64,000 nucleotides of DNA from Kudoa neothunni (Eukaryota; Animalia; Cnidaria), in NCBI GenBank assembly GCA_964304625.1, contig OZ199838.1, positions 2,479,329 through 2,543,328 of the forward strand. The letters are read 5' to 3'. Of this stretch, positions 8,361 to 61,273 are shown piece by piece. The notes below the pieces were generated by a model, which saw only the letters and a program-made list of their open reading frames with translations, did not search any database and was not told where the DNA came from. The translations under genes were made by a program, and so were the position numbers. How positions within the stretch are numbered: the first letter of the stretch is position 1; every line of letters starts with the position of its first letter.

Positions 8361-11263
8361 ATGAGTCACGACAAAAATCAAGTAGGACTACAGGCTCTGT
8401 TTTTTGAATGTCGGACATTTTTCAATAATTTAATGTTTATTCTTATTCTAAAATTTATAAAATCTTACTACTTTTGCCATTTATAACGAAAGTTAGTTCA
8501 ACCAGTAATTTTTGATCATTCACTTGTCGTTCCACTCAATAAATTGATACAATTATTGATGCTGTCCCTTAAAATAATAAAATAAATCAACTGATCATAT
8601 TTTTAGTTTTACCCTGACCTTTCGAAAGGTCGGCCTAAATCAAAAAACCCCGAGGTATCAGGTTATCCTACAGCTCCTGGAATTGCACAACCAAATTATG
8701 CACCTTATTCTCCTGGTGCAGCTCATCCTCCCCCAGCCAATTGGGGAGCATATCCACCGCATTCTCCAGGAGGGGCATATCCTCCACATTCTACAGGAGG
8801 TGCATATCCACCACAACCAGCCGGAGGAGCATATCCTCCACATTCAACTGGAGGAGCATATCCACCACATTCTCCAGGAGGGGCATATCCACCACATTCT
8901 CCAGGAGGGGCATATCCACCACATTCTCCAGGAGGGGCATATCCTCCACATTCTACAGGAGGTGCATATCCACCTCAACCAGCCGGAGGAGCATATCCAC
9001 CACATTCAACTGGAGGAGCATATCCACAACATTCAACTGGAGGAGCATATCCACCTCAACCAGCCGGAGGAGCATATCCACCACATTCAACTGGAGGAGC
9101 CTATCCATCACATTCGCCAGGAGGAGCATATCCACAACATTCAACTGGAGGAGCCTATCCATCACATTCGCCAGGAGGAGCATATCCACCACATTCAACT
9201 GGAGGAGCCTATCCATCACATTCGCCAGGAGGGGCGTATCCACCCCAACCAGCCGGAGGAGCCTATCCACCTCAAACAACTGGAGGAACTTACCCTTCTG
9301 CTCCTTATCCCACATCGGCTCCAGCGGGTCATACGACATATCCAGCAGGTAAATAATTTGTTCATTCACACAAGGTTCCTAATGGCGCTAAATTTCGCGC
9401 AAGAAAGTTTGCGAGAATTATTATTGTTTGAAGTTCGAGAATAACTCAATAATTATTTATTAACCACACCTAAGAATACTTTTTTTGTAAAATGATCGCA
9501 TAAAACAAATACTTTGTTATTATTTAATTCTAAAGTAACTTGATCGTGATGGTTCACAATTATAGCATTTTTTAATGTAAAATTAGTTAATATATTAAGT
9601 AATAACCAATGTAACTTAAATAATTTCGAGAGTGTTTTTTTCTTCCATTTAACTATATCTATTATGCCGAACTAATGATTTTCTATTTTGATGATTTAAA
9701 CGGAGATTTTTGTTGATATGGCATAAAATTCTCCAAAAATCATGAATTTGCATTTAGGACATACGCAAAAATTGGGCGCCGTTGCACCCTTGGTATCTAA
9801 CGACAAAAACTTTTACACGAACTATAATAATTGTAGAAACCAACCTTGAAAGCTGTTGGATCATTCGATCCAGCTTCCGATTGCAGAATTTTATACAAAG
9901 CATTCAAAGGCATAGGTAATTAGAACTTAATTTTCTTGGCATTGAACTCACATATAGGATGCGATGATGGAGCCGTAAGAGATTTGTTGACACACCGTAG
10001 TCTTCAGCAACGTTTGATGATCAAAGATCAATATGAAAAACTTTATGGAACAGTAAAAGGCGCTATTATAATTAAATGAACTAATAAAAGCATAGCCTTT
10101 AATGAAAAAAATGAAAAGCGAGCTAATGGGCGAAAGAGAAAAAATGTTAAAAGCGTTGATAATGGATCATGTAGAGAGGGATGCATATTACGTTCGGGTG
10201 GCAGTGAAAGTACATTGAATCATAACAGTGTTGTTGCCAAGGGCTTGATAAAACCAAATTTAGCACCTCGGAACAGACGAAAATTGTCTCAACACTATTT
10301 TGGGTACCAGCTCAAACAAGGTGAGTATTAATATACGAATATAACATAATATTTTTCGTGTAGGACCTACACGCGATAAAAGCATCCTATTCCAAACGTA
10401 TTTATGCTATTTCAGAAGAAACTTGCACATATAAACTTTAAGAATTCTCTCGAGATATTGTGAAAGATGTCAAGGACGATACATCCGGAAATTATATGAA
10501 TGCTCTCGTTGAGATTTTGAATGTAATTACCCATTTTAAATAATTTATGAGACTTCATCTTGAAAATATTTTATATAGGCAAATCGAAGAGAAAACGTAG
10601 TACCTCATCCGGATGAAGCACGTAGATATGCTAACGAATTACACAACGTAATTAGAACAATATTTTTGCACAAGACTGATATAGTATTTAGAGCTGTAAG
10701 GGATTGGTAAACAAGAAACATGATGTTCACATTAAAATATTGTGCAATGAAAGTTTTCAAATGATCCATCTAATTGATCTTGAAACTAACAAGGTAGATC
10801 TATATAAAGTAGTAACCAGTTGTTAATTTCCAATGAAGCTCTACGGTTATTCTCTTCTCAAACATGTTGAGAAACATTTCATGGGCAATATAAAAAACTT
10901 GCTCTACGATATCTGTAATAATTGAATCTACTTAAATAATAAATAGATCCGATTTTAACTACAAATTTCAACAGGTGAATTTTCAAGCTCATCCTACGAT
11001 TATTATGCTGGTAGGCTTTTAACCGCGATAATTGCACACGATGTCCGATCGGTCGTAAGACTCATGATCAGCAGATGTGATGTAAGTCTCCAAAGTACTA
11101 ACTGAAAAATTCAATTTTTTTTAATGTTTAGATTGATCTTGGAAATATTTTGGATGTTGTCCAAAAGTTTAAAGGGAAGAAAATCATGGAAATTGTCGAT
11201 CAAAGCATTCCTGAATTGGATAGTTTTATGAGGAAGGCGTTGTTGGCACTGGCGGCTTGTTAG
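8361..11263 (+). CDS. Annexin with long Gly/Tyr/Pro/His-rich N-terminus (annexin A7/A11-like architecture)
   Basis: Exon 1 is probably MSHDKNQ (8361-8381, phase 0) and joins the repeat exon 8607-9348. About 11 short exons follow, encoding KPTLKAVGSFDPASDCRILYKAFKGIGCDD...HRSLQQRLMIKDQY...HLGTDENCL...DVKDDTSGNY...RLMISRCDIDLGNI...KALLALAAC*, i.e. four annexin repeats. Stop at 11261-11263. Confidence 0.92.
8741..9290 (+). repeat. Coding tandem repeat, 27-nt unit, about 20 copies (GGAYPPHS[T/P], GGAYPPQPA)
   Basis: Unit ggaggagcatatccaccacattcaact and variants, lying inside annexin exon 2. Confidence 0.95.
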
Positions 11264-22495: not shown

Positions 22496-25400
22496 ATGAG
22501 CGACCGATGGAATGAATTGGAAAAATTGCTTATCGAAACGAGTATTTATTATAGTATAATATTTGCAAACAATATAATAAATAGGTCAAAAACTTCCCAA
22601 TCCAATCCGATCGAAATGTGTTGGTGATCTCTTTACGCTGGAAGAATTGTCCGCCTATCCAATAGAATTATACGGTACCAATTACCTTGATTTGAACGTG
22701 GCAACCCAAATTTTACACACATTTAATGTGGAAAGTCAAAATAAAAACCGATTAACTTTGGAACCCTTGAATTTGTAATTTTCAATTATATTAAATCTTT
22801 TAAAGTTAGTTTAGGGAGCAATCTGAAGAACAAGGTATCAACAATTGGTTATAATAATCGTTCCTATTATTTTCTATTAGAGATTAAAACATTGTTGGAC
22901 GAGATAAAAGGAATTAATGATAATTCGGGTTTTTCTAAAATATTTCGATTTCAACTATAATAACTAAAATGCGCCTATTTAATATTTAGTTGATTTGTAT
23001 CAAAATATAAAAAAAGCTTTCGAAAGAATTAGAAACTACATTTTTACGAATAAAGATAGCGATAAAGTTCACTTTAATAAATTATTTTAATGATTAAATT
23101 ATTCTAGAATTTTTCCAATGAAATCCTTCCACAAATTATTGTATTCAACGATAAAATTAATGATTATCCTCTTCTTTTTGAGTATTATGATCAGGTGTAT
23201 ATCAGCATAAATTCGAATGAGGCCAACCGCGATCAAATTGCATGGTATTTATTAGTGAAAATAGAGCTTGTTTCCTTCGTACTAAGTTTTTCACACGAAA
23301 ATTCCTGTGAATCTATCGATATTATGCCCATAGTGTCGGTCGGTTGTCAACTGATACAATCTGTGGTGTATTTATTGAATAAGCAGCTAGATTATTGTAA
23401 AAATTTTCTCATCGAAAGCGACGTATCTCTCGAACAGTTGCTAACCAGTTACTATAAACAGCTGGCGTTCTACATCACAGAATTTTGTTCACGCAATATA
23501 CTTTCAGAGAGTACAATATACAGTTGTTTGTTAATGGCTCAACTCGTCATAATTTGTCAGCATCAACTTGGCCAAAATTATTGCTGGTTGACTCAGCTAT
23601 TTGTAATTATGCTGAGCAGGTATCCACAACACTTGGATTTCGTATGGCAGGAGATTATTGGCATGTTGAATAATGACGAATTTCCTCGCCACTTCACCAT
23701 ACAATTGCCTTACGATTTTCTCATCACTCAACCAATTAGATTTCACGATTTTTTTATTTTATCCTCGATCCAGGCATCCATTACACCAACAAGTTACAAC
23801 ACCAACAAACACCTTAACATGAACCCTGTCTCCACTATTCACACTGTTGTGGATTGGTTGTTGGAGAGATATTTTTTTAGACTAATCAGCGCCTCTACAA
23901 TCGAGGATAATAACTCTCAACCGCACACATTTGTTATCTCCTCACTAAAAACTTCGGCTGGTAAAAGAAAATCCAATTCACTCAACAACAGTCCATTTGG
24001 GGGGAAACCTAAAAAAATGGTTTCATTCAGTACGCCCCAAAATAAACAATCAAATAAAGCTCGCAAAATATTATTCCCCAGGTGCGGTAATATTTCGTCA
24101 ACCGGTCTAACAGATGCGACCAACTCAGACACATCCGTCATTGATAGTGTAGAATCGGATTTTGATAATAATTTTAACAACGCGGGATCAATTAATGCTC
24201 TTCAGAATTTCATCGAGACTGTTGTGCTGTTGTCTGATTATCCACAGTTTCCTGGCTGTGTGCCGATTGTGTATTTGTTTGGGCGTGTGTTGTTGGAAAA
24301 GATCCGTGCCAATAATTATACAAATTTGATTGAGAAGACTGTGCTCAACTGCATTCAGTTGATTTTTAAACATATGAATAATTGGGTTGTGTTGAATGAG
24401 TATGCTATTATCTCTCATTCTTCCAACTTTGACAACCACCAACTCAATACTCTTGCGCTTATTTACTATCTCTACGGAAGATGTTACCAAACTTCACCTA
24501 TTAAATTTGATGATAGCTTGTCAAAGTTCATAATGAATAAAGTTTTATTTGATTGTGCAGTTGATGTCTATTTATTCAAATATTATTTCAACACACTGGT
24601 TTCTTCAACCGACAATAACAGTGATTTTAATGCCAAGTTATTTTCAAGTTCAAACGATAGTTTTTTTGATTATTTACAACGCTATGTTAAAAATGACCCA
24701 TCGATTTTGTCAATGTAATTAAGAGTTATTAAAATCTAATTAGATAATTCTCATAATATTTAAATAGGTTGTTTCAAAGTTTGCCTGTAACTAAAGAGAA
24801 AATTCAACAGTTAGTCGGTCATTCAAACGCACATTTGGTTTCTACTTTAAGGTTGGAAGTGTTGATACAAAATGTACGTAGTTTAAATGAGTGAACTTTT
24901 TTGATCAAATAATGAGATTCATATGATCGATATTCGATTTAGTTTGTGCATCTGTTGGAACACAATAATTCGTTAATTCGTTGGAAAACCCTTCAAATGC
25001 TTGATCAACCTCAACTGTTTCACAAAATTTTAATTGAAGACGTATAATTGAATGATGACTTGGTGTGTTGATGTGACTAAATTTATAGATAAAACTAAAA
25101 GAGACTATTCATTCGAGAATATTTGACTCTTGTTGGATGGTGCGATTTCATTGTGTTCAGCTGATTGGTAGCGTCTGCATGGAGCAGAAGGTTGCCGATG
25201 GTTGGATTTCGCAGCTTTTCAATCGAACGTGTGATGTGAAGGTGAAGGTTCGCGCTAAAGCTATCTCTCTGCTTCAAAATATACTAATTTTGAATTTATT
25301 TCCGTCTTTAAATTTTCAGTTGTTTGACCATATTTTACGTCGATTCAATGATGAGTTTTCCATAAAAGTAAGGTGGCTTAAATTATTGAACTAACTTGCA

Positions 25401-27526
25401 TATAGGTTATTGTTTTGAGAATGTTTCAACAATTGCTGACTCCCTGCAACTTTGCTTTATTTTCAAGCTTGTTGGAAATTTACACTACTTTTAATGATAA
25501 TAATAATACTTATATTATTAATAATGATATTACTACCACTAATAATAATAAGTTTGAAAAATCAAACAAAAAATGGATTTACTTTAAGCTGAGAAATATT
25601 TTTGAACAAATGTTACAACCCATTCAAAGATCTAAACAATCCACGGTCGATGTGGATATGGGTCGTAAACTGGATAACACTATTCCTAGTAGTAGACTAG
25701 TTGAGTTTATCGAGTTTTTACTACATTCCATTTCGAAAAATGTTGATGAAAATAGTAGTTTGAGATTGATTTTTATCACTCACATCATTTCTCATGTTTT
25801 GTATAACTGTAAAACTCTTACAGTTAGTTCGAGAATTTTGAATCATATTTTAAATATTCTTAAGTTTTCGGTAAATAATTATTCTGTCCCAATCGAGAAC
25901 AACGTGAGTGATAAAAATTGCTTTGAAAATGAATCTGTCACTACAGTGATTGAAGAGAATTATGAGGACAATAGGGTCACTGATGATACCTATTTTTTTA
26001 ATGACACTCTCTATGCACTGCTCGATTTGTTGTTCATTTACGTCGATCGGGCTGAAACCACTCTACACTCGAATATTTTCGACAAAATTGAAGATTTGCT
26101 GTTGAAATTCATTACCGATAGGAATTTTTCACAAGATTTGGTTGTTTTAAATAAAACTATTCGTGTTTACGCGCTATTATTTCGTTTGAACTGTTATGGA
26201 ATTTCAGCCAAGAAAGCTGGTCGTAATATGCCCAATAGTCTGGTTACTTTCTTCAAACGACATTACAAATCTGTAAAGATGAAACCAAACAACTCTCATC
26301 GTCAATGTGATTCTTCTTCATTGCAACAGCAATCACTTTTTGTGTTTGCGTATTTCTGCCGACATTTTCATGTAGAGCAATTGTCAATTATATTATCGAA
26401 AGTTGAACGTTCGTTAAAATATGACGCGAAATCCATTGTTGAACATATTTTACAACTTTTTATAAAACTTTTGCGAGATAATTCAAATGCAGATAAGAAT
26501 ATAAAAGCCAGTGCTGTTGAATGTGTGTGTTTGGTATTTGATCGGTGGTTCAAATTGGTGACTCACAACCTGGAAATCAAATCCATTTTTGGTGAATACC
26601 TCCAATGGACCAGTCATCCCAAAGTTATTTCAACTATATTAAAATCACTACTGGCGCTGACGAAAAATTACCCTCAGGACGCCTGGTCGAATTATTTGAA
26701 TGTCTACTTGGATGTACTTACCGAGAAAACCATTTCCGACCCAAACCTCACTGTTCGATATTACTCCGTTCAATTGCTGATTGATGCACACCGCAATGAA
26801 CAAATTTCTCTCACTACTTCTATTACAATATTTGTTGCTATCACCATTGCCGATCCAAACATCACTGTCACATTGGAAATGCTGAAAGAACTTTATAAGA
26901 TGGATTCGATTTTTATGTCACTAATGAAAGTGTCAATTGAACGCTCCTTTCAACTGTGGTGTCAAATCAACCCCAGTCATAAGTCTCTTCGGACTTTGTG
27001 TGATGGCGACTATTCGAGAACTAATGGTAATGGAGTCGTAGGTTGCGATGGAAAAAAATCGACTGTGTCGCTCTTTCAACCTATTTTTGATGTCATCTCA
27101 AACAGCGTTGTTTATGACACACAGCACAAATCCAAAGCTACCGCAACAAACAATAATCGAAACCTACTGTTCAAAGTCCTATTATCCTTAATTGAGTCCT
27201 GCGGATGCTTTCAAATGAAACTGTTTATTGTGGAAAATTTGAATACTATCAATCCATTTACCAAAAACGAATTGAGTATGATATATAGATTCTTCGATGT
27301 GCTAACCAACACCACCAACTCCAACAAAGACAGACTCTTGTCATTGCATTGCCAATTGTTTTTCCACAGAAAAATATCCGGCGTCGATAAACCCCAATTC
27401 ACATTGAAATCCAGTTGTATATACGAATCATATGAATCGCAGGCGTCAGAATCAAAAGTAATCAAAGAAATCAAAAATATGGAACTGACCTGTTCAAAAT
27501 TGTTTGACGTGGATTTTCATCTGTGA
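22496..27526 (+). CDS. NIPBL: Cohesin loader NIPBL/Scc2 orthologue, highly divergent (~1500 aa)
   Basis: The HEAT-repeat core IHSRIFDSCWMVRFHCVQLIGSV...FNRTCDVKVKVRAKAISLL...ILRRFNDEFSIK parallels NIPBL VHGRLMDNSTSVREAAVELLGRF...ERILDTGISVRKRVIKIL...MIRRVNDEEGIK. The long exons correspond to ORFs 23195-24718 and 25415-27526. The start codon is tentative. Confidence 0.8.
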
Positions 27527-36952: not shown

Positions 36953-39387
36953 CCCTCTAACGAACTTGGGGTCTAAAACACCCCAAGTTTTTTTTGTTTC
37001 GTTATTATTAAAAAAAAATATAAAAATAAGTAATATGAAAATGCAGAAATTTCTATCGACGAAACTTTGAGAAAAATGACAATTTAATGTGTATATTAAT
37101 ACTCTTTAATCCCCTCGGGAAACCGCCAGTACTTTTTTATACAATTGTTAACAAAATTCAACATAAATATGCTGTTTGGTGTACGTTTTTGATTGTTCAT
37201 GACTTTCAAAATCATAAAATTCTTACCAACTGCTGACTTACACTTCTTAAATCATTTTATAACACTAAATTATATTTCGAAAGTGTTTATTATTTTCTTA
37301 ATATCGATAAAGTTTTAGGAAATACATTTTTAATACACATGAACCCTACATTACTGGTAGGTTTAAAACTAAATGATATTTTTATATTGAGATGATGTTC
37401 TAAATTAACTTTTACTTCCTTCAGCACTGATGATTTTTAACCAAAAAAATGATATCACTCCATATGGTTATTTCGATGCACGAGTGAGTTATATTTTTTG
37501 AAGCGTGATGAGTAGTTCGGAGGAATATATAGATGAGATCGAATCGTCTGTTAGTGAATTAGATGATTTTTTGTGTGAGGTATCCGACAATACGAAAGGA
37601 ATGTCAGATGACGAGTGTCCTGCCGATGCTACGATAGACAAAAATGGAACGGTGCGGACTTTGAAAAAGCCCCTTTCATCGACAGTTTGACTTGAAAATA
37701 CACTTTCTTCTCGACCCAGGTCCAACGGCATATTCAATTCAAAGAATCAAAAATACTGAAGATTGTCTCACAATATTTTTTACAAATAATATTTGTGGTG
37801 AAATAACAAAATATACAAATGAATTTGGAAGAAGTCGCTTCAGAGATTCTTGGACTGATCTAGATGATGTTGAGTTTAAAGCATATTTGGGAACGCTTGC
37901 TTTGATGGCTGTTCATAAAGATCGAGAGGAGCCTTTAATCGAGCTGTTTAGTCTTTCCGAAGGAAAAGAATTATATCGTCAACTTTTTTCATATAACCGC
38001 CTCAGACAAATAACGAGATCTCTGCATTTTGATGATGCAAATACTAGCGTTCAAAGAAAGGCGACTGATAAATTCTGTGCCATCCGTAGTGTATGGAATA
38101 TGTGGGTTGACATTTTGCCGTTGTTTCCCTCCTAATGAGGATATAACTGTAGATGAGCAGTTAGTGCCATTTAAGGGAAGGTGCCCGTTTAGGCAATATA
38201 TGCCATTAAAACCAACCAAATATGGTTTAAAATTCTTTCTGCTGGCGGACCCAAAGGATAAATATGTTCTTAACGTCCCTCCATGTCTTGGAAAAAACGG
38301 AAGTGAAGCTGGTCGAACCTTAAACGTGGGTGAAAACATTGTACTTTCTCTGACAACCCCATTTCATTATTCTGGAAGAACGGTTGTTGCAGATAATTTT
38401 TTCACTTCTCTGGGGTTAGCAACAAAATTACTGGCGGAATAGTTAACATATTTGGGGACCATTCGTCACAACAAACGAGATCTGCCATCTTGTGTTCTTC
38501 CAAACAGATGCAGAGAATTGTACAGTATCACGTTTGCGTTCTTCAAAAAAAATATGTTGACATCATACGTAAACGAAAAAGGCAAGGCTGTTATTATATT
38601 ATCAACTGGCACCAACAATACAGAAACAGACAAGGAAATGGGCAAAAATAAGCCAGTAACTATCTTACACTACAACAGAACAAAGGGTGGCGTAGATACC
38701 ATTGATAGAATGTTGTCGTCTGTTTCAGTTAGAAGATTTACTCGACGATGGCCATTGATTGTATTTTTTAATATGGTAGACTTATCTTTAACCAATGCTT
38801 TTGTGCTATTTAAATATATTTTTGTTGAACAAAAAAAATGCGACGTTAATTTATGAAAGAGATGGCCCAAGTCCTTTACCGACCATTCCTTGCTAAAAAT
38901 ACACTTGACAAGAAAATTATCAAAAGGAGTCATTCAGCTCTCTCCGCCAAACCAGTGATTGCAGATTCTAATTTGAAAAAGAGTCGATGCGAATTTTGTC
39001 CTCGACAGACTGATAAAAAAACTAACACCCGCTGTGTTAGCTTTTTCTGTCGAGACCATTCATCATAAAAATGTAAGTTTTGTTAAAAATAATACCAGTT
39101 TTATAAAAAAATATAATATGTATTGTTTTTATTATTTCGCGTTATTAGACTTGTTTTATTTTACCGCCGAATATTTACGAAACGCTATTTAAGCCAACCG
39201 AGCCAGATTAGATAAGATTAATGGTTTTATGAAATGTAGTTTCTCTGAGAATTCATTCGATAAAAATTCATTATAATTTTTTGATCGCTTAATAATATTT
39301 TTTTGGTTATGTTTATGCAATAAAAACTTGGGGCCCCAAAGACCTCAAGTTCGTTGGAGGGTAGTCATTTTTACATAACTTAGAGGT
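36953..39387 (+). mobile_element. Full-length piggyBac transposon, recently inactivated (PGBD4-like transposase)
   Basis: TTAA at 36949-36952 and 39388-39391. The left end ccctctaacgaacttggggtc matches the inverted copy at 39328-39361. The transposase carries the DDD triad (VDEQL, ADNFF, GGVDTID) and a C-terminal Cys domain, and is broken by a few stops (37688, 38440) and frameshifts. Confidence 0.95.
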
Positions 39388-48530: not shown

Positions 48531-51500
48531 CTAATGTTTAATAAGATTTGAGGTTTGGGTCGTGTTTTTAGATTTCGATTGCATCATATAAGATGGTTTT
48601 GAGGCCGATCTACTCATCAATCCGACTGATGAAAGAGCGTGAGTTCTCATTGTAGAATTTGACAATACAATAATCAAGAAAAAGAATATTCCCTGGGAAG
48701 CATTGGTTATAACGAAAACCAATTCTCCTTTCCCACCATCGTCAATGAAGATTAAATATTGGAATATCAATGGCAGACCCAAAAGAATCGCTAAGAAGAA
48801 TATCTGTTTGGCCTTGGATAGGGTTGATCCACTTTTACCCCTTTTCTTTTCCGCTCGTCTCAAATTGCAGATTACATATATACAAACGAACACACTAAAC
48901 AAAACAACAACACCGCTAGGTATTGTTGTTGTGTAAAAACTCGTAGCGCCAGTTACTACACAGCTAAGGAAATCAATGAATAAATAGAGTTCAATGACAA
49001 GACGTTACTTTGAATTCTTTGCGTAATTGTTCCTCATAAACACAACACACAGCGATGTAATCACTCCTGGAATAGCTATAAAAAATTCTTAAATGAAAAA
49101 TCAAGGTATATCTATATTACCCCAAGATAGTGCTAAACATAATTTGAAGACAATTCCAGGAATTTTCTTCATGGTAAAAATAAGCGTATGGAATAATAAA
49201 TAGGTGTTGAGCAAGAAGGAATAATAAACCGTTTGCAACATTACATGAAGACTGATCGCCAAAGCGAAACAGACCTTTGGTTTATTTTTAAAGATATTAA
49301 TAGAAACAAAGAATGCTTGTAGGAAAAACAAAGAAATGCATAATCCAATTTGTGCTTTAACACGCATAGTTCTTCTTGTTCTAAAATCAAAATATGAGTT
49401 GAGACTGCTGAACATGATAGGTAATCATGATTACTCTGAGGTGATTAGACAAATCAATGTTAGAAATAAACAGACCAACGATATTACTGCTAAACAAAGA
49501 GAAACTTCGGTTTGACGATATTTGTTAGCATCAGACGAAGTAGCATCGTCCCTCTCCCTGAAATCAAACACCACAGCATAGCTTGTAGTATGATTACATG
49601 AGCAAGTGACATTTATTCGATTTTGGGGCAGTTCGGTCCTACTGAGGGGATAACAATGTACTTGTTCCCATTTGAGTGTACTTCCTAAACAGTGAATTAT
49701 ATTTTGTTAACTAGGAGCGTAATTTCTCGTAAAATAATGTAGTAATTTAAATATACTGTTTAATGTACAACATTTGGTGTATAGGACATCGGCAGCATTA
49801 TTAATAATCTGGCTGAATGTAAAATTAATCTTTTTATTCTCTTGGTTTTTAATTTTCAAAACGATAATATCACCAGCTACCATCACATTATCCTTGGACT
49901 GAGTTACCACAGGTTGGGCTTTAGTGATAGCCAAGGCAACCTGATTTTCAGCAGTTGGGGTATTGGGAGTGTTACTATCCAGTGTGTCTATTTGAATGGA
50001 CATGGTAGTTTCAGAATCACTTGTTGTGGTACTATTTTCGCTCCTATTTTTAGCAGTTAATGGTGTACACATTATTGTATAAATACTTGGTTGAATATTG
50101 AATCACATTAGAATCTTCAGCTACATCAAATGCTTTAAACTTAAAATGATCATTAGAAATTTCCTCAGTTTTTTCCATATTTAATATGATGTCATCGAGA
50201 ATGTTAACAGCCTGGAAAAATTTCCTAAAATATCATAATTATGGTGTACCAAATAGCAGAAAAATACTCTTCTTTGTTTTCGACTATCGCAGGAGTAGTA
50301 GTTTCTTGGGTATTACCAGTTTCTGGTTCAGGAGTTGTTTCCTCCTTTGCATCACCACTTCTATCTAGATTCAAATATATATTTTATCGATCACAATATA
50401 TAAATTATTTACCGTTCAAAATGTCAATCCATGCAGTGCTAATTTCGGTCACAGACTAAAATTATTCATTGGAAATAATTTTCAATGGGATAATATTACT
50501 ATTTTTTTATCTTCATCCAATAATTTTAATTTGTTTTTATTGAAAATGCTTACATTATTAAATATTTCGGTCCATCTTAATTCTACCATCATATAAATAT
50601 AAATGTATATATTATTATTGCAAACTTATATCAAAATCCAATTTTTGTCGTTGTTCAAGGTAGGCAGAATCATAAAAGAATGTGTAGAATATTTTAGTGT
50701 TGCGTTGACCAAATGAAATTTTGCATAGCTTATTTGGGCACAAAACCGTTTTAAACCCGTTGGATTTCTCCTCAGGTTGTAGATTTCCGTCGGCTAATGT
50801 CCAATTCAAACTAATTTGGCTATAATCCTCTACTAATGTGATTTCCAAATATAGTTCGCCATCCAGAAAATAATTTTCAAATTTGAACTGTGATCTCACT
50901 ATAAAGTTAATTTATATCTACCGATTGTTAGCACAAATTCACCTTTATCAATATCTAATGATTTTTCCTCCGAAAATATTACAGACTTAACTTTTACGAC
51001 ACAATCTTTCTTGATATCGTAAACAAATTTGGCGTCGCATTTACTTTCCACACATGAAACTAATTTATTAACACTTTGTTCCCCAGTGATACCTTTAACA
51101 TTTTTATCATCACTGCACGCAATTGTTAGATTCAATGGAAATTTCTGGTAAGGTTCATCGAGAACAAACTTTAAATTTAACGATCCCGAATCAAGGTTGT
51201 GGTCGACTTTATACGCAACTTTTGCTACAAATAAAAAATAGTTCGATGTTTAATTATTAATCTATTATTTTACGTGGGGTATAATCATAGGTGTAGGTCT
51301 CAGCAAATTTTTCAGATGTTACGGATATCGTTACTGGATTATAATAATCATTCATTGATAACTCAGTTGTGCATACACCCTTATCGCAGATAACGTTCTT
51401 ATCAGACTCAACGAGGTTAGAATCGTCTTTGGCATTATTTACTAGGTATTTGATATCTAATTTTATTGATGGAACGTACTTTCGTAATTTCCAACTAAGC

Positions 51501-54500
51501 GTAACAACTAATCCATCGGTTTTTCTAGAAAAAGAGATAACTTCTAATTCATTTGATGCTAAATTAATTTATGAATTAAAATAATTTTGATGAAACAAAT
51601 ATATATACATCCAGATATTTTGAATGTTTTTGGAATGAGCATATCTGAGTTGAACGTAAGATATGTGTCATCATTAGTAATACCATTTTCTATCGTAAAA
51701 TCGCAAACATTTTTATTGCAGTTAATATCTTGAGTAGATTTATTTGGAGACAAATCGGTTGAATTATTATTATTCATCAATTTGTAATGATTTATTTTAA
51801 TTTTATCAAATTCTCTATCCATTATGAACATAACTTTTAGGTCATTCCTATCTTCACTATATGCAATATCATAAGGATATATTCCTAAATAGATTAACAT
51901 ATATTATTATTGTTAAATTATTATTAAACGATTTTAATGATTTTAATTTCAAAAAAAATATACCTTTACCAATTTCGATAGATTTTTCTTCGGAAAATAT
52001 TGCTGAGTTCACTCTAACTTTACAATCTTTGGTGTAATCGTAATCAAACGTATGTACGCATCTTTTGTTTGTGCATGGAATCTTTTCTACTGAAATATTC
52101 TCATTGCTAAATTTGTAATAACGTTTATCGTCACTGCAAGATATTTCCACGTTAGCCGAAAACGCATTATAAAGTTTATCAATCGTAAAAGTGAGAGTTA
52201 AATTTTTCCCCTCAATATTATGTTGAATTTCACATTTTGTCTTTGCTAAATGTTTAAATATGAAAACAAAATATACACAGTTATTTTGATCTACGTGGGG
52301 AAAGAATATGTGAGTAAGATTGAACGAGTTTATTCGATGATAATTCCAATGTACCAGGATAATAATAATCGTTAAATTCAATTTTTATACTGCACACTCC
52401 ATTTTTACAAGAAATTTCCTCATTTTTTGTAACTTCGTTAATTCCGCCATCTTTTGATGTATACTTAGTTTCTATTGAAATCTCGGGAAGATGTTTTCTC
52501 AGTTTCAAACTGTAGCTAACAGCAAAATCTTCAACAGTTTTGGTGAAATTCATAACATTGAGCAAACTAGAAGCTAACATAATTTAATTTAAATGTAAGA
52601 ATATTTCTCCAAATAATTCTTACGTCCTTTGAGTAATAAATCTCGTGGCATAAGCATTTCCGATGAAATAGTTATATAACCATCTTGTTGAAGGGTGACA
52701 CCTTCGATTTTCAGTTCACATATATTTTGTAGGCATTGAATATCTTGGGTGATTTCGCTCGACTTTATATTTGCTTTACTTAAGCCAAATATTTTATAAC
52801 CATTAATAATAACTGATTCAACGTTTTCTTTCAATTTGATCATTATTTTCATTTCCCCATTTTCATTAGAATATTCATAATCGTAGGAGTAAGTTTCTAT
52901 CGTAGAAAAATAACAAATATTTAGTAATTCGTATATTACTTATCATTATATAATATCCATATTCATATGGTGATTCATATTTGCGCCTAATCGCCAACTC
53001 CCTTTTGGGATCTATGTTGGTCAATGTGAAGGTACAAACTCCTTCTTCACAATCAACCGGGGTTAATGGTTCTTGTTGTAGTTCACTTTCACCACCTTGT
53101 TTAACAATGAATGTATTTGGTGCATAAGAGGCAGTTATCTTTAATAGTCTAAATTTAATTTTTAAATTTCCATCGCTTGGCCAATAATCCACCAATGTTT
53201 CCTTTCTTCGCCCTAAATATACATAAAAAGGTTTATCTTGTGATTAAAAATAAAAGTACTAATTGTAAAGTTTTAATTGATAAAAGTATTATTAGTTTCT
53301 AATCAAGGGTTATAAAACTAAATTATGTAGCTTTTTGACATAAAGAATACTATTCTTTTTTCCTGATTATATAATACAATAATATATTTATTAATCGCAA
53401 TTAAACATTTAGAATCCCAAAAGACATATTATTAATAATGATTTATTCTGTTTTATTAAATTATTCTAAAAATATTCCACATGATCCAAAATTACGGTAA
53501 AGGAATCCGTAACGGTCTTTACCTAAATCAATGTTCCCTAACCTAGGGTCCTCGTACTAATTTCAGAGGATCCGTGAGAAGACTATCACTCATAAAAATA
53601 TCACCCATCAAACTTTGTCTTTGGAAAATTCCTTATTATAAGAATAGTAAGTTTTAAACACATAATTTGGGAACAGTAAGTTCATAAATATGAATATGTG
53701 ATACAATATGCTCATGGGTTCGGATTTATTTAGCATTGCTAATCGGAGGCCGTGAACAAATAAGATTGGAAAACACGTTTCTAAAATAACTAAACTTGAA
53801 TTTTCACAATAAACAATATTTCGACTAGAATCATGAATTCAAATCAATCATACAAGTACATTGTTTTAAACATTGAATTTAATGTTCGATTTATATTGTC
53901 TTTCTCATATTAAACGTCAAAACTGTAAAACTTGGTGTCATTAGATTTAGTAGACAACAAAATGTACGCCATAATTAGACCATTATACCAAACTTTGTCA
54001 GATGAGTGACCTCCCTTACACGAAATTTATTTATTTCCGATGAACACTTTTCCATGTGGACGAAAACGATGATGGAGTATGCCATTTCAATGATTACACA
54101 GATTTTGTATAGGATGCGTTGAGATTTTTATTAAACTTTCTCAATCCGTGACGTCTTGTCATGATATTTTTAAAGGGCGAGTAATCCGTCTAAATATATA
54201 ACAATTTCTAACTTATGCGAATTCTTTGATTCTGAATAATTGCAAACAACTCGGATATTAGTTCTCAGTCAACCTTACAGAGTTCCAACGTATAATTGGT
54301 CCATCTAATTATTTTAAACTTAAGGATAGTTAGTTAATAATGAAATTACTCCTAAAATGTTCTGCAAGCTTAAGGATAACCTTATACGTTGTCTGGATGA
54401 AAATTAATATAAATGTATTGATCATTCTGCCATAACTGAGAATTTATTAAGTAAATGTGCCAGATTGGCTGTTTGTAATATTCTGAGAACTCATCTCAGA

Positions 54501-57500
54501 GGATTCGTGATTATTTAAATTGAAAAACTTTCGTTTTAATTATGCTGGAATTCATCTAATACAATTGTACCTTCAATTAGACAGAAACAAGGAATATTTG
54601 AATAATAGGAATATTTGTTATGGAATATATTAAACGAAAGTTTTTATAAGGCAGAATTGATATGTATCACTAACGAATGCATATATTCCATTCATGTATT
54701 TTATATGCTTGTTAATAAAAAACCTATTTGATACAATTTAATATTAATATTTATATTAATTTAGTAGAAAAACTAGTGCTAGATTTACTTGATTATTATT
54801 GGAAGAGGAATTTACAATCAAATTTGTTGTACTTGAAAAATAATATGAGTTTATTTTATTCGTTATGAAATATAACGTTTTATAATGATGATAGAAATTA
54901 TCCAAATAGCTTATAATATTAAAGCCCATATATAGATAAATAATTTACCTGTAGAAATTCGGCGCGGAATTTCAAAATTATTCACGTATATATTTGCATA
55001 GTTAAATTGATCACACTTTTCCGGAATCGGCTCTTTAAATTCGCAAATTCCCTGGTTGCAGTTTAACTCTGTAATTGTACTGACAGGACACTCGGTGAAA
55101 CTGTTTGTGATATAAGATATTTTGATTTTGATTTTTTTTACATCGACGTCAAGAATAAAAGTATAAGATATGGAATTATCTTCCAAAAATATTCGTACAT
55201 CGTATTTAAATTCACCTATTTAATTCATATATTTAATGAGAAACAAAATATAATCACAAATTTCGGTTTTTGTTGTAATTAATTTGTTTTCAAAGGAAAC
55301 TTGTATTTCATTTTTTTGATACATATCAATGTCGCTGAGTACCCCAACGCAAAAAATGTCGACACATTTTATGTCGATTACAGCACTTATTTCAATAGGA
55401 TTGTTTTCACTGTTTGGAGCTGTTATTAAAACCGTCTTAGTGAATTGATCTGGAGTGCTACTTATCCGAGTTCCAGTTAAATATAACGTATGATCTAAAT
55501 AAATAGTTCTAGTGTAAAGTAGATTAGATTCGACTGCATTTGTTGTGAAAATCGCTACAAATAATAATTATTGAATAAATTTGCATATAATATAGTTACA
55601 GTCTCTAAATATTGCAGTATTGGTTGGTGTCTCATCGATAGAAACTATATTACCGTCTTGAGAAATATTGACTGAAATATTATCACAACTAGAATCATTG
55701 GAACAACTTGTTCCATTAGTTTCAAAACATTTATTTTTCGTAAAATTTGTAGTTTCATTTTCTAAATTTCTGTTTAAATAACAATATTTTTTATCATTTT
55801 TTAAAACTAACGATTTATCATCATTACTAACAGTGAGGTAATCAATTTTTTTCTTTATAGCTAAAAATAATCAATATAAAAAATTTTATAATGAATAAAT
55901 ATTGACTAACCTAATTTTTTACTAAATGGGAGTCTTGATGGACCTATTACCTCTTCTTTGTTATAGATTTCAGCATAGAAATAATTGTTATCTTGTGAAT
56001 TGGATATAACCACATTATAAGTGGAACAATTGATATTGACATTTGACTGGTTTTCACAACGACATGCCACATTTTCGTATATTTTATTTTTGAGTTGGAA
56101 CATGTAAATGCATTTCAGTGGATCAGACGGACCCATTGATACTTCTATCATTATTTCCTCAATCGTATATGATAATAATTTCATTTTGTTGAATTGAAGT
56201 TCTAAACATAATTAATTTTACTACAATAAATGACTAACTTTATGTGTATATATACAATCACTTTATTTAAAAAAATCGAGTAACTTGGTTTAAAATGTTT
56301 TGCATTTGAACATAAACGAATTATTAATTAATAATGATATGGTTTTTTATTTTTAAATGTAATGCATTATAATTGAATATTTATGATAAAAATTTTCGAT
56401 TAACCCTTTCATGCCCAAATTTTTTTTCGCTTGGAAAAAATATATTCACTTAATTATACGTTATTTATTAATTTTATAAAATTGCAAAAGTTTACAACAC
56501 GTTTATTCGTATTCTTTAAGATTAAATAAAAATGTTCACTAGGGTGAACATTGTTCGCATGAACGAACAAAAACAATTTATTTTCTCAGAAATAATGCTT
56601 TTCGATTCTTTTCAATGATTATGATATAAATAAAAATAATTTCAGTATTTCACTATACAGCATGGAACGTTACATTTTTTACACAAAAATTGTGTATTCC
56701 GTTGACATAGTCGACATCTACTTTTCGAAGAATCTATTTCAGTGTAGTGCCCAACATTGTTAAACTTTATAGATTTTGACAAAGTAGAATTTTTATTCTT
56801 TGGGGTGTAATTTGGATGCAATTTATTCGAGTTGTCAATAGAAGGACGGTTATGCTTCGTTGCTGTAACGGATTTTTTAAGATATATCAAATCTTCGGTC
56901 AACAATTCAATAAAAGAGAGAAAATCTAATATAGCTCTATCAGGGATGCAACTTTCCGTTGAATTTAAACGATAAATGAGCCAATCGTTGACTATAGCTG
57001 TATTCAATCCCCAGAAGAATATCCACATATAATATTTACGGCTTTTATGATATAATTAATACAATGCCATCAACATATCGGATAGGTCAACTCCACCCAT
57101 ATTTTTGTCGTATTCGGTTACAACATCCGGACAAAGAATTGACAATAATTTCTTCAATTTTCGATCAAATCTCTTCACTAGTCCGATAGGTTCTGGCGAC
57201 GAATGCGTCGAAGATAAAGTAACGATGAAGCCATCACACCATTGGGTGATGGCAATACCTTTGTTGACATCGTGATAACTTTCATAGGATTCACGCTCTT
57301 TTTTAATTCCTTTTGCGGAGTAAGAGTTCAATTTTTGATCCTATTTCTCCGAAAGGTCCCAACGGAATATTTGTTTCCTTTTTCAAATATAGCTCCATAG
57401 ATGTAAAGAAGTTTTCAAAGTACATTAAGAAAGTTTCACAAGTTGGAAGGGTCTCCGATAATTTGATGACAAAATCGCCTGAAACTAAATCACAGCTATT

Positions 57501-60500
57501 TTTAACGACAGGAGGTTTCCTATCGCAAAAATGGAAATCTTACACTATACCACTAACGTCACATCTGGAAAACACTTTAAATCCCCATTTTTTAGCTTCT
57601 TTGGAAGATATTGTTTAGATTTGCATTTTCCCTTAAAGGGATCATCTGTTCGTCAATAGAGTGACATCTTTCTGGGTTTAACTTCAATCAGGCAGGTCGA
57701 ATATGTTCTAGGAATGATCTAATTTTGACAAATCTATCATATCCTGGCAAGTTGGCATTGACTACAATGTTTTGGTTGTTGTAAAATGGAGATATCGTAA
57801 TAGTTGTTCAAAACGATTCCTTAAAAAACAGTCAGATACTTTTGGATAGTTCGAAGATTTGCTCTAATAAGAGCGATAACGAGATAGTTTAACAACACCC
57901 ATCAGAATTATCACTCCAAGAAACGTTTCCATTTCAGTAGAGTCCGTTACAAAATTGTCGCCACATTGGGTTACATATAGGTTTGATTCATTACATATTA
58001 ATTCAATCAGTTGTTGACTAAAGAACAGCTTGAAATAATCATACGGACGATATAATCCAACATTGATTTCAAAATCTTGTTTTTATATAACTTTATTCGG
58101 TAATTTTAACCAGATTCCTTTTTTAAACCATTTGAAAGTTGAATCCATAACACCAGCTTCAGAATTATCTGACGAATCTTCGTCAACAACCGATGTTTAT
58201 GATATATAGTCATCTTCAAAAGATATATTAGGCTCTGAAACATCAACATCTTGTATTACAACTACTTCAATGATGATCTGACCGTTTGGTTGCTTTGAAA
58301 TATTCAAATCGTGATCCACTCCCACTCAACATGATTTTTGGACATGTGCCCAATGTTCACCCTAATGAACACGTGTTTTTGTGCTTATAACTGTTTATAT
58401 TTTTATAATTAGAATGTTTACATATAATATACATTGTCTTTAAGCTTGCACATACAACATATATTTGTTCTGGTTCTATTGCCTTAAAATTGTGCTGTTT
58501 TTTAGGGTAAAAATAATACAATTTTAAAAATGCAAAATAACGAAAAGTTTCACTCTACACAAAATTACATATTGCATTATCTGTTAAAAAATATATTAAA
58601 AAATAATTATATATGTATAAACTTTAAAATATTTTAACTGAATAAAATATAATAATTTTTAAATACATATATAGTTAAAATAAGTCGTTGTTTATCCTAG
58701 TGAACATTGGATACAAAAGGGTTAAAATATATCCAATCCAATCCAACACATAAATATTGAATTTTGGAATTCATAAAATACCTGATCTGAATATTTTGCA
58801 ATATAAAGCATTGCCATCGTGAACAAAACAAATTTTCACCACTTCATCTGCCTTTATAATATATTCTACTGCTTCCCAGGATTCATCACCATTACATTTT
58901 TCATGATTACAAGTAGTAGTGATTGGCTCTTCGTCCTTGGGAATAAATGTATAATTCTGATAAGTAGAAATTTTAAGATTTTCTTTTAATAAATCGCCTT
59001 TCTTATAATAAAGTTTGACTTTTGAATTCATACCATCACTAACTTGCATGTGAAAAACATTCTCCTATATTTTATTATATTTATTTATTAATTGTATATG
59101 TTGTTAATTACATTCTCTTTTTCAGGATAATAGAATTTCATGTAATGTGGATATGTAGCAGAATCTGTGATGAACGAAATGTGGACCAAATAATTTTCAT
59201 TATATAGTATGGTTTGCTCATTGCGCTGATCCTGAGCGTCATATTTCGTTGCGTCAAATTTCCATTCAAGGTTTCCCTCATTAATCTGGCTGGAATACCA
59301 TGCATCCATTATTTCGTTGGGACCATATGAATTTTTAAACAGATTTTTTATTCTATCACTAGCATAGGTACCTTCTACAAATTGAAAATTGTTGGTATCA
59401 CCACGTCCTATGCAAAATATATCATTAATAAGAATTACGAACAGCTAAATTTTAAAAATTCATAAAAATGTATACTTATTACGTAGGTGTCAGTGTTTTC
59501 ATTTTCAACAATTTTTACCTTCAGTATTATTTCTTTAATTTCGTTTATATTCAAAATTTTGGAGGTGTCAAATGAAATATTATCACAATCTATAGGATCT
59601 GTACTTGTTGCAATTTCTTCTTGTTTGTTGTCATAATTGAGTTTAAACAGTTGGTAGGTACACATGATATTTGATGAACCATGTTCTCCAAATGAGCTGC
59701 GAAAGATCAAATTGTCATCAACCCACGTATAACTCCAAACAGACGCTATTGGAACTAGAAAAAGTTTCAGAGTATTTGATTGCATATTAAAATATATTAC
59801 TAGGGCCGTATTCCACACTATCCATATATTTACCACACGTCAAATCATATTTGTAATATTTGTTTCTTTTGATTTCAAATGATAGTCCATTATTCTTTAA
59901 AGTTGATGCACAAGTTAAATCGCTTTCATCGCAACTAGTTGAAGGAATAAACTCTTCGCTATCAGAACTTTTGGATAAAAGAGAATATCTACAATTATTT
60001 CCATTAATTGTACTCAAATTGTGTATAATTTTAATCCTTCCTGATTCGTAATGTATTCTTTCGATTAGATTTCTACCAACATAAAAAGACCCGCTGTATA
60101 ACGTTTGGCCTTCATGTGTAACAATTATATCGTTGTTTTTGTCCAGATCATGAAACTGAATAATATTAGAACAATCGCCGTAATATACTTTTGAATTGGA
60201 AGCATTATCAACATTTTTAGTATTAACGCTGAATCTACAAATTTTTCCTGTTATATATTTTCTTTCTGGTATAATCGAGACAGTATTTAATTCATATGAA
60301 AACTTGTAGGACTGTTTAGGGAAACCTATTTATCAGTATAAAATAATATTATAGTAATAAAATGCAAATTACCAATATTTATTATTTGGGAAATCACGCT
60401 ACCATTAGATTTTGTTATTTTTATAAAAAGCTGAGGTTCAAATACATGTGGTATGGAGAGGATATTCGAACCTGATGTTAAAGTTACTGTGTTATCGGAT

Positions 60501-61273
60501 CTATTTTTGTCATAAACAAAAATGTTATCACCAATTTTTTGTCCTACAATATTCTTTATTTCAATTTTTGATATTCCATTTTGTTCGATTGTTTTTGGAA
60601 TAGTTAACTGTATCATTTCATGATTAGTATCAGCAGTAATGTTTTCATCAGATTGTTCTATAAACATTATTTTATTCTAACAAAATTCAATAACGTAGTT
60701 ACCATGTATTACATTCTTTACCAAATTTATTTCCGAATCTACGATATGAATATTAACTGTCCAACTGTCACTTTTTTGAGGAATTAGAATTTCTTTTTCC
60801 TCACATTTTCCTGATTCAATAGGTCCCTGATCATCAACTTTAAAATTACACATCTTATTAACCAGAAATCCATCTTTTGATTTTAAACTAAATTTATCCG
60901 ATTCAATTTTGACATTGATTTTTGTTTCTTCATACACTATAAAATTTATTATTCATTTTTTAAATATGGATGTTCTAAAATGATAATTACAATTCCTAAT
61001 TTGGTCGAGATAGTTCAATTCAGGAATCCAAATGAATAATGTGTGTGGAGCGAAATTTGTTATTGGTATAGAATGCTTTGAACATGATTTGAGATTATTT
61101 TTGTTTGTTCCATCGTAAGAGTTGTATGTAGCCGCGTTATTATATTCTTCGATGGCCTCATTCATTCTGATTATATAATAATCACACAACAGTCCCCATT
61201 CATCTTTTATATTTGACCAAATATGTAAAATACCAGAATCAACGTAATGATTGAATTTTATGTCGTGTGGATC
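48531..61273 (-). CDS. Very large adhesion GPCR (family B2): modular ectodomain, GAIN/GPS and 7TM; 5' end unresolved
   Basis: GPS motif KWEQVHC...VTCSCNHTTSYAVVF (about 49570-49680) is followed by a family-B-type 7TM (AQIGLCISLFFLQ; VCFALAISLH; LALSWG; NASQGIFFFLI) ending at 48531. Upstream lie about 20 exons of 250-330 nt joined mostly by phase-1 mini-introns. Estimated length is over 2,300 aa if this is one transcript. Confidence 0.85.
53480..54500 (-). mobile_element. Probable heavily decayed LTR-retrotransposon (gypsy-like) pol relic inside a GPCR intron
   Basis: Broken minus-strand fragments are weakly reminiscent of RNaseH, linker (NGILHHRF) and integrase in the expected order, inside an unusually long intron. 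No intact motif. Confidence 0.3.
56404..58721 (-). mobile_element. Full-length decayed piggyBac (PGBD2/3-like) in a GPCR intron
   Basis: TTAA|CCCTTT at 56400 and AAAGGG|TTAA at 58716-58725, with subterminal aatgttcactagg repeats. Transposase fragments include SIDEQM, KWGFKVF, EYDKNMGGVDLSDMLMALY and SRCRLC...CKKCNVPCC. Confidence 0.92.

Follow-up and report, generated by a model that had tools for sequence, protein, structure and literature searches.

The stretch examined here is a window of 64,000 nucleotides from Kudoa neothunni (contig OZ199838.1 of assembly GCA_964304625.1, positions 2,479,329 to 2,543,328). The window was AT-rich (~29% G+C) and eukaryotic in character. On its minus strand, a run of stop-free frames of 50-180 codons each extended from 61279 to 48534. 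A sequence-only reading had described a giant adhesion G-protein-coupled receptor (GPCR) ectodomain at 50620-61273, made of about 20 one-exon modules with a C-x4-C motif, and had proposed it as a novel system. We found that the stretch very likely carries the middle part of a single large adhesion GPCR gene, in which an array of predicted beta-sandwich modules precedes the membrane domain.

Nineteen module exons (E01-E19, 61272 to 50626, minus strand) encoded 20 modules of ~77-100 amino acids (aa), with two modules in E04. They were followed by a Thr/Pro linker, then by a GPS motif and finally by a complete secretin-type seven-transmembrane (7TM) domain. Splice sites were picked by frame continuity and GT..AG ends and were then compared with three paralogues in the same genome. 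The exons of the window, with one transposon remnant in an intron, were as follows.

E01, 60991..61272, minus strand: module exon with a phase-1 acceptor and no start codon; 78-85% identity to the paralogues, ratio of nonsynonymous to synonymous substitution rates (dN/dS) 0.24
E02, 60703..60936, minus strand: module exon, phase 1-1
E03, 60373..60657, minus strand: module exon, phase 1-1, without cysteine
E04, 59801..60325, minus strand: double exon of 174 aa, modules E04a and E04b; E04b modelled as an immunoglobulin (Ig)/FN3-like sandwich at moderate confidence
E05, 59476..59754, minus strand: module exon, phase 1-1, weak kinship to the C-x4-C family
E06, 59112..59374, minus strand: module exon without cysteine; 3' junction in phase 0, kept in four of four genes
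E07, 58782..59064, minus strand: module exon with CNHEKC, membership in the sequence family not detectable
piggyBac-type transposase remnant, 56645..58082, minus strand: decayed, in several frames (PF13843, E 4e-13 and 1.2e-3), inside the E07/E08 intron
E08, 55923..56201, minus strand: module exon, phase 1-1
E09, 55600..55860, minus strand: module exon, phase 1-1, C-x6-C in place of C-x4-C
E10, 55258..55554, minus strand: module exon, phase 1-1, CVDIFC
E11, 54949..55215, minus strand: C-x4-C family module, CNQGIC, followed by a 1.74-kb intron
E12, 52940..53212, minus strand: C-x4-C family module, CEEGVC; the sole outside relative (P0002) is E12-like
E13, 52624..52896, minus strand: C-x4-C family module, CLQNIC, opening the three-exon unit duplicated as E16-E18
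E14, 52295..52573, minus strand: C-x4-C family module, CKNGVC, partner of E17
E15, 51964..52245, minus strand: second-subtype C-x4-C module, CTNKRC, five Cys, partner of E18
E16, 51609..51884, minus strand: C-x4-C family module, CNKNVC
E17, 51274..51558, minus strand: C-x4-C family module, CDKGVC, the module that was modelled
E18, 50946..51224, minus strand: second-subtype C-x4-C module, CVESKC; phase-1 donor by homology in four of four genes
E19, 50626..50898, minus strand: membrane-nearest module, CPNKLC; best-conserved module (86% identity, dN/dS 0.15)
E20, 50268..50364, minus strand: Thr/Pro/Glu-rich linker exon, 5' boundary uncertain
E21, 50087..50224, minus strand: presumed start of the GAIN region, no Pfam match
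E22, 49757..50043, minus strand: presumed GAIN region, 37-40% conserved in distant paralogues
E23, 49435..49684, minus strand: GPS motif C-x-C-N-H-T↓T-S-Y-A and transmembrane helix 1 (TM1)
E24, 49121..49380, minus strand: TM2, TM3 and the beginning of TM4
E24b, 49009..49075, minus strand: 67-nt exon finishing TM4 (W-A-I-P), read from the sequence
E25, 48531..48963, minus strand: TM5-TM7, short cytoplasmic tail and stop codon

The gene continued past the end of the window. Four extra conserved minus-strand exons (U1-U4) were found in the adjoining 20 kb, and together with an exon for the signal peptide they were located 2.5-6.5 kb past the window end.

U1-U4, extended coordinates 70071-70397, 69685-70089, 66799-67107 and 66451-66795, minus strand: colinear upstream of E01 in three of three paralogues
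First exon, L031:6461-6518, minus strand: signal peptide of 19 residues, ~80 nt upstream of U1 and outside the window

The first exon was common to the window gene and all three paralogues and comprised Met-Asp-Lys from its ATG, then a hydrophobic stretch, and a GTAA donor in phase 1. A conserved ATG just upstream of U1 was rejected as the start codon, as its frame closed before U1 with no usable donor. In a distant paralogue at 15.995 Mb of contig C1, U4-like and E01-like segments lay in one 291-aa open frame, which tied the exons outside the window to E01. The gene start was placed outside the window, ~9.2 kb upstream of 61273, where the sequence-only reading had ended the ectodomain. In total, the gene spanned ~22 kb with at least 29 coding exons, and its product was ~2,800 aa by summed exon lengths. 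It contained ~24 modules (U1-U4 beyond the window end and those of E01-E19 within it), nearly all of them on single symmetric phase-1 exons.

The membrane part of the product was examined to assign the receptor class. The GPS motif matched PF01825 with 26.2 bits (cut-off 22.5) on the exon at 49435-49684, directly before TM1. The last exon alone matched 7tm_2 (PF00002) with 21.0 bits (cut-off 20.6), and seven hydrophobic segments were readable across E23-E25; with the 67-nt exon finishing TM4, all seven helices were present. Profiles of the receptor part were built from the window gene and more distant paralogues. Among PDB entries, the five-sequence TM5-7 profile matched adhesion GPCRs and nothing else; ADGRF1 was the best (E 1e-5), then came ADGRE5, ADGRL2, ADGRD1 and ADGRG2. 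The GPS profile aligned with the GPS of ADGRL3 (E 1.5e-3) over T-C-S-C-N-H-x-T-x-[FY]-A-V. The cleavage site H-T↓T-S-Y-A-V-V-F was invariant across the receptor family examined, and the catalytic His (-2) and the nucleophile Thr (+1) were both present. A signal peptide and a large modular ectodomain, as known from adhesion GPCRs, were found in the conserved first exon and the module array. Because the Thr/Pro linker, the GPS motif and a complete secretin-type 7TM follow the modules, the predicted gene product is an adhesion GPCR (class B2). This agreed with the receptor type named in the sequence-only reading, and GPS and 7tm_2 both stood above their Pfam cut-offs.

The exon boundaries were compared among the window gene and the three paralogues, which lie in tandem on contig C2 (10.465-10.535 Mb). 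The 23 exon frames defined at first were all colinear in the three paralogues, with 53-87% aa identity. At homologous positions of the four genes, phase 1 fitted 65 of 75 acceptors and 68 of 75 donors. E02-E05, E08-E17 and E19 had phase-1 AG/GT in all four genes. The first check left three misfits, namely the E01 acceptor, the E06/E07 junction and the E18 donor. In four of four genes, the E18 donor read G/GT after I-D-K, in phase 1. The E01 acceptor was in phase 1 at 61273/61272, which is the position where the sequence-only reading had ended. As a result, 17 of 18 internal junctions were in phase 1, and the sole exception (E06/E07, phase 0) was conserved in four of four genes. The earlier description of about 20 one-exon modules flanked by phase-1 introns was thus confirmed, with 20 modules in 19 exons. 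Introns were 43-82 nt long except for E07/E08 (2.58 kb) and E11/E12 (1.74 kb). An alternative genetic code was considered for exon frames parted by single stops and was ruled out by the short GT..AG introns there (45-66 nt, multiples of 3).

We then considered the sequences of the modules. C-x4-C was present in 11 of the 19 exons E01-E19, at 0.55-0.64 of exon length. When each exon was shuffled 20,000 times, the motif occurred in 1.18 exons on average and in 6 at most. The ten motifs listed earlier were all found, and CVDIFC in E10 was the eleventh. Pairwise hhalign comparisons in local mode gave probabilities of 99% for E13/E16, 99% for E14/E17 and 100% for E15/E18, and E11 and E12 linked to these exons. 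By these alignments, the three-exon unit E13-E15 is duplicated as E16-E18, and the duplication preceded the split of the paralogues. A hidden Markov model (HMM) iterated over the fetched loci collected 114 domains, including all of E11-E19 and U1, and 95 of the 114 contained C-x4-C. The consensus showed alternating hydrophobic positions, the Cys pair, and then D-x2-K-x-Y-x-I and S-x2-L. Trp was weakly represented around column 23 (30-50%), and Tyr occupied column 63 in 43% of the domains. Neither was invariant; they are at most suggestive of the core Trp (strand B) and Tyr (strand F) of FN3. E05 aligned with the 114-domain profile at an hhalign probability of 80% (E 1.3e-5, 68 columns) and is a probable outlier member. 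In terms of sequence, E11-E19, U1 and probably E05 are one orphan family, and C-x4-C is its only invariant feature.

This family was not represented in the libraries searched. In Pfam, E01-E19 gave no match at cut-off, and among 24 members of the module family no Pfam family recurred, even with E allowed up to 10. The fn3 HMM (PF00041) was absent from these 24 at the same limit and from all 19 exons when E was allowed up to 1, and Calx-beta, cadherin, EGF, LRR, CUB and PKD had no Pfam match in any exon. Searched against PDB sequences, the module profile returned nothing beyond chance matches to Di-Ras (E 0.3 or worse). The sequence-only reading had seen no EGF, cadherin, Calx-beta, LRR, CUB or canonical Ig/FN3 signature, and the searches bore this out. 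A strong match of the modules to a known Pfam family, which would have counted against an unrecognised module, was not found.

The fold was examined by AlphaFold2 modelling of E17, using an alignment of 24 sequences, all from one genome. The model had seven strands, a predicted local distance difference test (pLDDT) score of 86.7 and a predicted template-modelling (pTM) score of 0.77, and the five models spanned pLDDT 71-87. In the structure search (VIA), the first domain (D1) of IL-4R was the best match (Z 9.1-9.2, root-mean-square deviation 2.4 over 85 residues). The next matches, at Z 7-8, were DUF3244, CBM56, LIFR/OSMR, CD148, tenascin, integrin beta-4 and 10Fn3 monobodies. Foldseek returned monobodies, FN3 and CBM56 at ~E 1e-3, and a structure atlas returned only generic bacterial sandwiches. 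The two cysteines of E17, C57 and C62, close the fourth strand (49-58) and open the fifth (61-67), with a two-residue turn between them. A two-sheet Ig-like (E-set) sandwich of ~90 aa was found for E17 and, at moderate confidence, for E04b (the second half of E04, pLDDT 65-85), which gave Z ~7 to a myomesin Ig, B7-H6 and an NCAM FN3. An FN3-type seven-strand sandwich was predicted for E17 only, and its matches at Z 7-9.2 were mostly FN3 and cytokine-receptor domains. On this model, the C-x4-C modules are predicted to have an ordinary FN3/Ig-like seven-strand fold; in sequence they are orphan. The beta-sandwich part of the earlier proposal was retained as a prediction, and the term "undescribed" was not, as the E17 fold is ordinary.

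Several points weighed against the reading of the locus as one adhesion GPCR with an array of FN3-like modules. A confident model was obtained for one module, E17, and the E04 model was poor (pLDDT 56.6, first half <50). The Z scores of 7-9 are just slightly above those of typical unmatched models. Because they are only modestly above background, we read E17 as having a common Ig/FN3-like fold, not as a family member. The C-x4-C pair would most likely form a disulfide stapling the hairpin of the fourth and fifth strands. The fold of 13 of the 24 modules (U2-U4, E01-E04b and E06-E10) is an assumption, because these have no sequence kinship to the family. Pfam had no GAIN match on E20-E22, and a PDB sequence search with E22 gave no match. 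All database searches were run exon by exon. Since the -1 residue at the GPS is Thr and not the usual Leu (H-T↓T and not H-L↓T; consensus H-[LI]↓[ST]), self-cleavage is uncertain. Finally, three RNA runs over both long introns (53100-59099) gave zero reads, which is no test of transcription, so exon joining, splicing and expression were judged from conservation.

The assumption about the 13 modules leads to the alternative that survived best, in which the ectodomain is heterogeneous. The FN3-like cassette would then be confined to E11-E19, U1 and perhaps E05, and the other distal exons would be of a different domain type or types, possibly including the true ligand-binding domain. This was consistent with the hhalign probabilities of U2-U4, E01-E04b and E06-E10 against the 114-domain profile (<=17%) and with iterated searches from each of these modules, which never reached the family. 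In addition, E01 and E08 were clearly better conserved than their neighbours (dN/dS 0.24 and 0.29), E03 and E06 were free of cysteine, and a feature-based protein atlas gave no usable match for E01. However, the distal exons were equal in size (77-98 aa) and had the same phase-1 structure. E04 was all-beta by prediction, and the E04b matches to Ig and FN3 domains pointed the same way. C-x5-7-C stood at the same relative position in several distal exons. We consider a heterogeneous ectodomain a real possibility, on balance doubtful; the other distal modules are conserved and predicted to be all-beta, and they are probably sandwiches that have diverged further. In either case, the idea of about 20 modules of one kind had to be narrowed, as sequence kinship was detected only for E11-E19, E05 and U1.

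A second alternative divides the chain into two genes, a secreted or anchored repeat protein ending at E11 or E07 and a shorter adhesion GPCR starting in the E07/E08 or E11/E12 intron. Either long intron could house a promoter and a first exon (E11/E12 is 2.4-4 kb in the paralogues), unspliced E11 runs into a short hydrophobic tail and then a stop, and the RNA runs gave nothing to decide the matter. However, the E11 donor and E12 acceptor were conserved, phase-matched GT/AG sites in four of four genes. E08 and E12 begin in phase 1 with no start codon or signal peptide, and no internal exon had either of these. The E07/E08 intron is only ~230 bp in the paralogues and is long in the window because it holds the decayed piggyBac transposase. 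The sole conserved signal-peptide exon sits upstream of U1. Two genes are therefore very unlikely. By exon order and splice phase, the chain can be taken with good confidence as one gene with its upstream exons included. The claim that the upstream exons belong to the receptor gene was supported in this way, by colinearity in the three tandem paralogues and by conserved phase-1 GT/AG sites.

The remaining two alternatives were weaker. A truly new fold, with the FN3-like model being AlphaFold defaulting to a common sandwich, would fit the single-genome alignment of 24 sequences, the near-background Z scores and the failure of every sequence method to tie the module to fn3. It is most improbable given that all five models reached pLDDT 71-87, that the strand pattern agrees with the alternating hydrophobic columns of the 114-domain alignment, and that independent weak profile matches led to bacterial fn3, Big_13 and DUF11 repeats in which C-x2-G-x-C is found at a corresponding position. 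Likewise, its lone position on another contig, the transposon remnant and the zero reads might suggest that the locus is a copy of the C2 array genes that is no longer expressed and is decaying. There is only a slim chance of this, since all of its at least 29 exons are open with intact splice sites and dN/dS is <0.7 in every exon (0.10-0.14 in the 7TM).

The selective constraint was compared along the gene. dN/dS against the paralogues was 0.10-0.67 in every exon, with similar dS. Since it was below 1 throughout, all exons are coding. The values were 0.10-0.14 in the 7TM exons, 0.15 in E19 and 0.24 in E01, and 0.3-0.67 in the modules between. Because dS was similar across exons, the better preservation of the 7TM indicated constraint and not gene conversion. 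The uneven dN/dS suggested that the ends of the ectodomain are constrained and its middle evolves fast. The array itself appears to have arisen by exon duplication.

We searched for relatives of the module family within and outside the genome. The module profile matched 37 places in its own genome. The loci at C1 15.95-16.01 Mb and C2 11.76 Mb likewise end in homologous GAIN/GPS/7TM exons, so the genome has at least seven receptors with this cassette. Outside it, a profile search of 1.84 billion representative proteins gave five matches at E up to 1e-3, of which none reached 1e-10. One of these, P0002, is an 89-aa fragment with 42% identity to E12; it comes from a sequencing run, where it lies on a contig of 942 bp and 29% G+C, and is presumably a real relative or a further paralogue. 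P0001, P0003 and P0004 are bacterial surface proteins whose repeats Pfam calls fn3, Big_13, Ig_Rha78A_N and DUF11, with C-x2-G-x-C at the matching place. The last one, P0005, a repetitive protein of 351 aa, contains C-K-Q-G-P-C (a C-x4-C) and had no Pfam match above cut-off. By profile comparison, no real relative of the family outside this lineage was recognised among the 1.84 billion proteins apart from the P0002 fragment. Word-indexed protein searches with the E12 frame and the last 7TM exon returned nothing, which are weak blanks given the length window of that search. A literature search for this receptor architecture found nothing specific.

These findings add a domain family that is invisible to current libraries: Pfam and PDB sequence searches gave no match, and 1.84 billion proteins contained next to nothing. 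It would form a new entry in the Ig-like/FN3 clan. The gene also provides a clean example of a large extracellular array made from symmetric phase-1 exons, with the three-exon duplication still visible. As a very divergent adhesion GPCR with a family-wide H-T↓T site, it offers a natural test of the weight of the -1 position in GAIN self-cleavage. The proposal of a novel system was overstated. No new kind of system was revealed, and the gene represents an unusual version of a well-known type of receptor, with an orphan, lineage-restricted FN3-like cassette.

Other features were observed in the window and in the sequence adjoining the receptor gene.

37692-38856, plus strand: second piggyBac-type transposase in three frames, read as a frameshifted copy because the three pieces together cover PF13843 positions 5-349
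8683-9444: His/Glu/Leu/Ile-rich tandem repeat, open in several frames on both strands, no Pfam match; it coincides with the highest G+C of the window (36.6%)
23195-24718 and 25415-27526, plus strand: two long open frames (507 aa and 703 aa) for which Pfam gave nothing at E up to 1e-3; they probably belong, as exons, to a single large gene that is unannotated
L031:6400-7630, minus strand: ~500 nt upstream of the first exon and two more patches with 72-79% DNA identity to the upstream regions of the C2 paralogues, probably a shared promoter and 5' untranslated region
L032:2037-8339, minus strand, 12-18 kb past the window end: second chain of ~17 exon-sized open frames upstream of the signal-peptide exon of the receptor, with C-x5-C-x3-C cassettes, more Gly/Ser/Thr and a hydrophobic first frame

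The last chain had no counterpart upstream of the C2 paralogues. Because the block is absent there, it is probably a separate neighbouring gene and not part of the receptor.

A mechanism can be inferred from known adhesion GPCRs. The modules would form a long, stiffened, probably glycosylated and disulfide-stabilised stalk that holds a binding surface far from the membrane. The stalk would bind a partner on another cell or in the matrix. Pulling or shedding of the ectodomain at the GAIN domain would expose the tethered T-S-Y-A-V-V-F peptide, and, as known for other adhesion GPCRs, this peptide would switch on the 7TM and signalling through G proteins. It is conceivable, and in our view rather unlikely, that the receptors (at least seven) form a lineage-restricted, fast-evolving repertoire, in which a constant GAIN-7TM part (dN/dS 0.10-0.15) is combined with variable FN3-like arrays (0.3-0.67) reshuffled by phase-1 exon duplication. 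Such a repertoire would serve diversified recognition of partner cells, host tissue or self/non-self, and not a single housekeeping adhesion receptor.

The modules were compared with known repeats. Like FN3 (PF00041) and D1 of IL-4R alpha, they are seven-strand sandwiches of ~90 aa by prediction, and animal FN3 and Ig modules are usually phase-1 one-exon units, as the window modules are. However, no fn3 HMM match was obtained at E up to 10, and identity in the structural alignments was 12-16%. In cytokine-receptor D1 domains, a disulfide joins strands around the C'-E connection, which serves as a lead only. The window cysteines are five residues apart over a tight turn rather than a longer-range pair. 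The bacterial FN3, Big_13 and DUF11 repeats of P0001, P0003 and P0004 share the short motif (for example, C-K-N-G-V-C) at the matching place and the repeat length of ~90 aa. In contrast, these matches span 18-45 profile positions (E 2.6e-7 to 1.7e-4), and the architecture is unrelated. Rather than membership in the family, the likeness most likely reflects convergence towards a stapled hairpin or a shared fold of very remote origin.

At the level of the whole receptor, polycystin-1 and the REJ family carry PKD repeats with GAIN/GPS and an 11-TM domain. They resemble the window gene in the long run of Ig-like repeats leading into the GPS. However, the window gene had no PKD or REJ Pfam match, and its membrane domain is a secretin-type 7TM and not an 11-TM. 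Among adhesion GPCRs, ADGRV1/VLGR1 has ~35 Calx-beta repeats, and ADGRF5 and ADGRA have Ig domains. The window repeats differ in that they match none of Calx-beta, Ig, cadherin, EGF and fn3 in Pfam, and the analysis found neither HRM nor any other named adhesion domain. Thr replaces Leu before the cleavage point, and the 7TM is very divergent, with its best PDB match (E 1e-5) reached by profile only. In contrast, the overall plan was the same as that of the long-ectodomain adhesion GPCRs, with a signal peptide, a chain of ~90-aa beta-sandwiches, GAIN/GPS and a secretin-type 7TM. Also shared with adhesion GPCRs were the tethered-peptide-like T-x-[FY]-A-V and the C-x-C-x-H-x-T core of the GPS.

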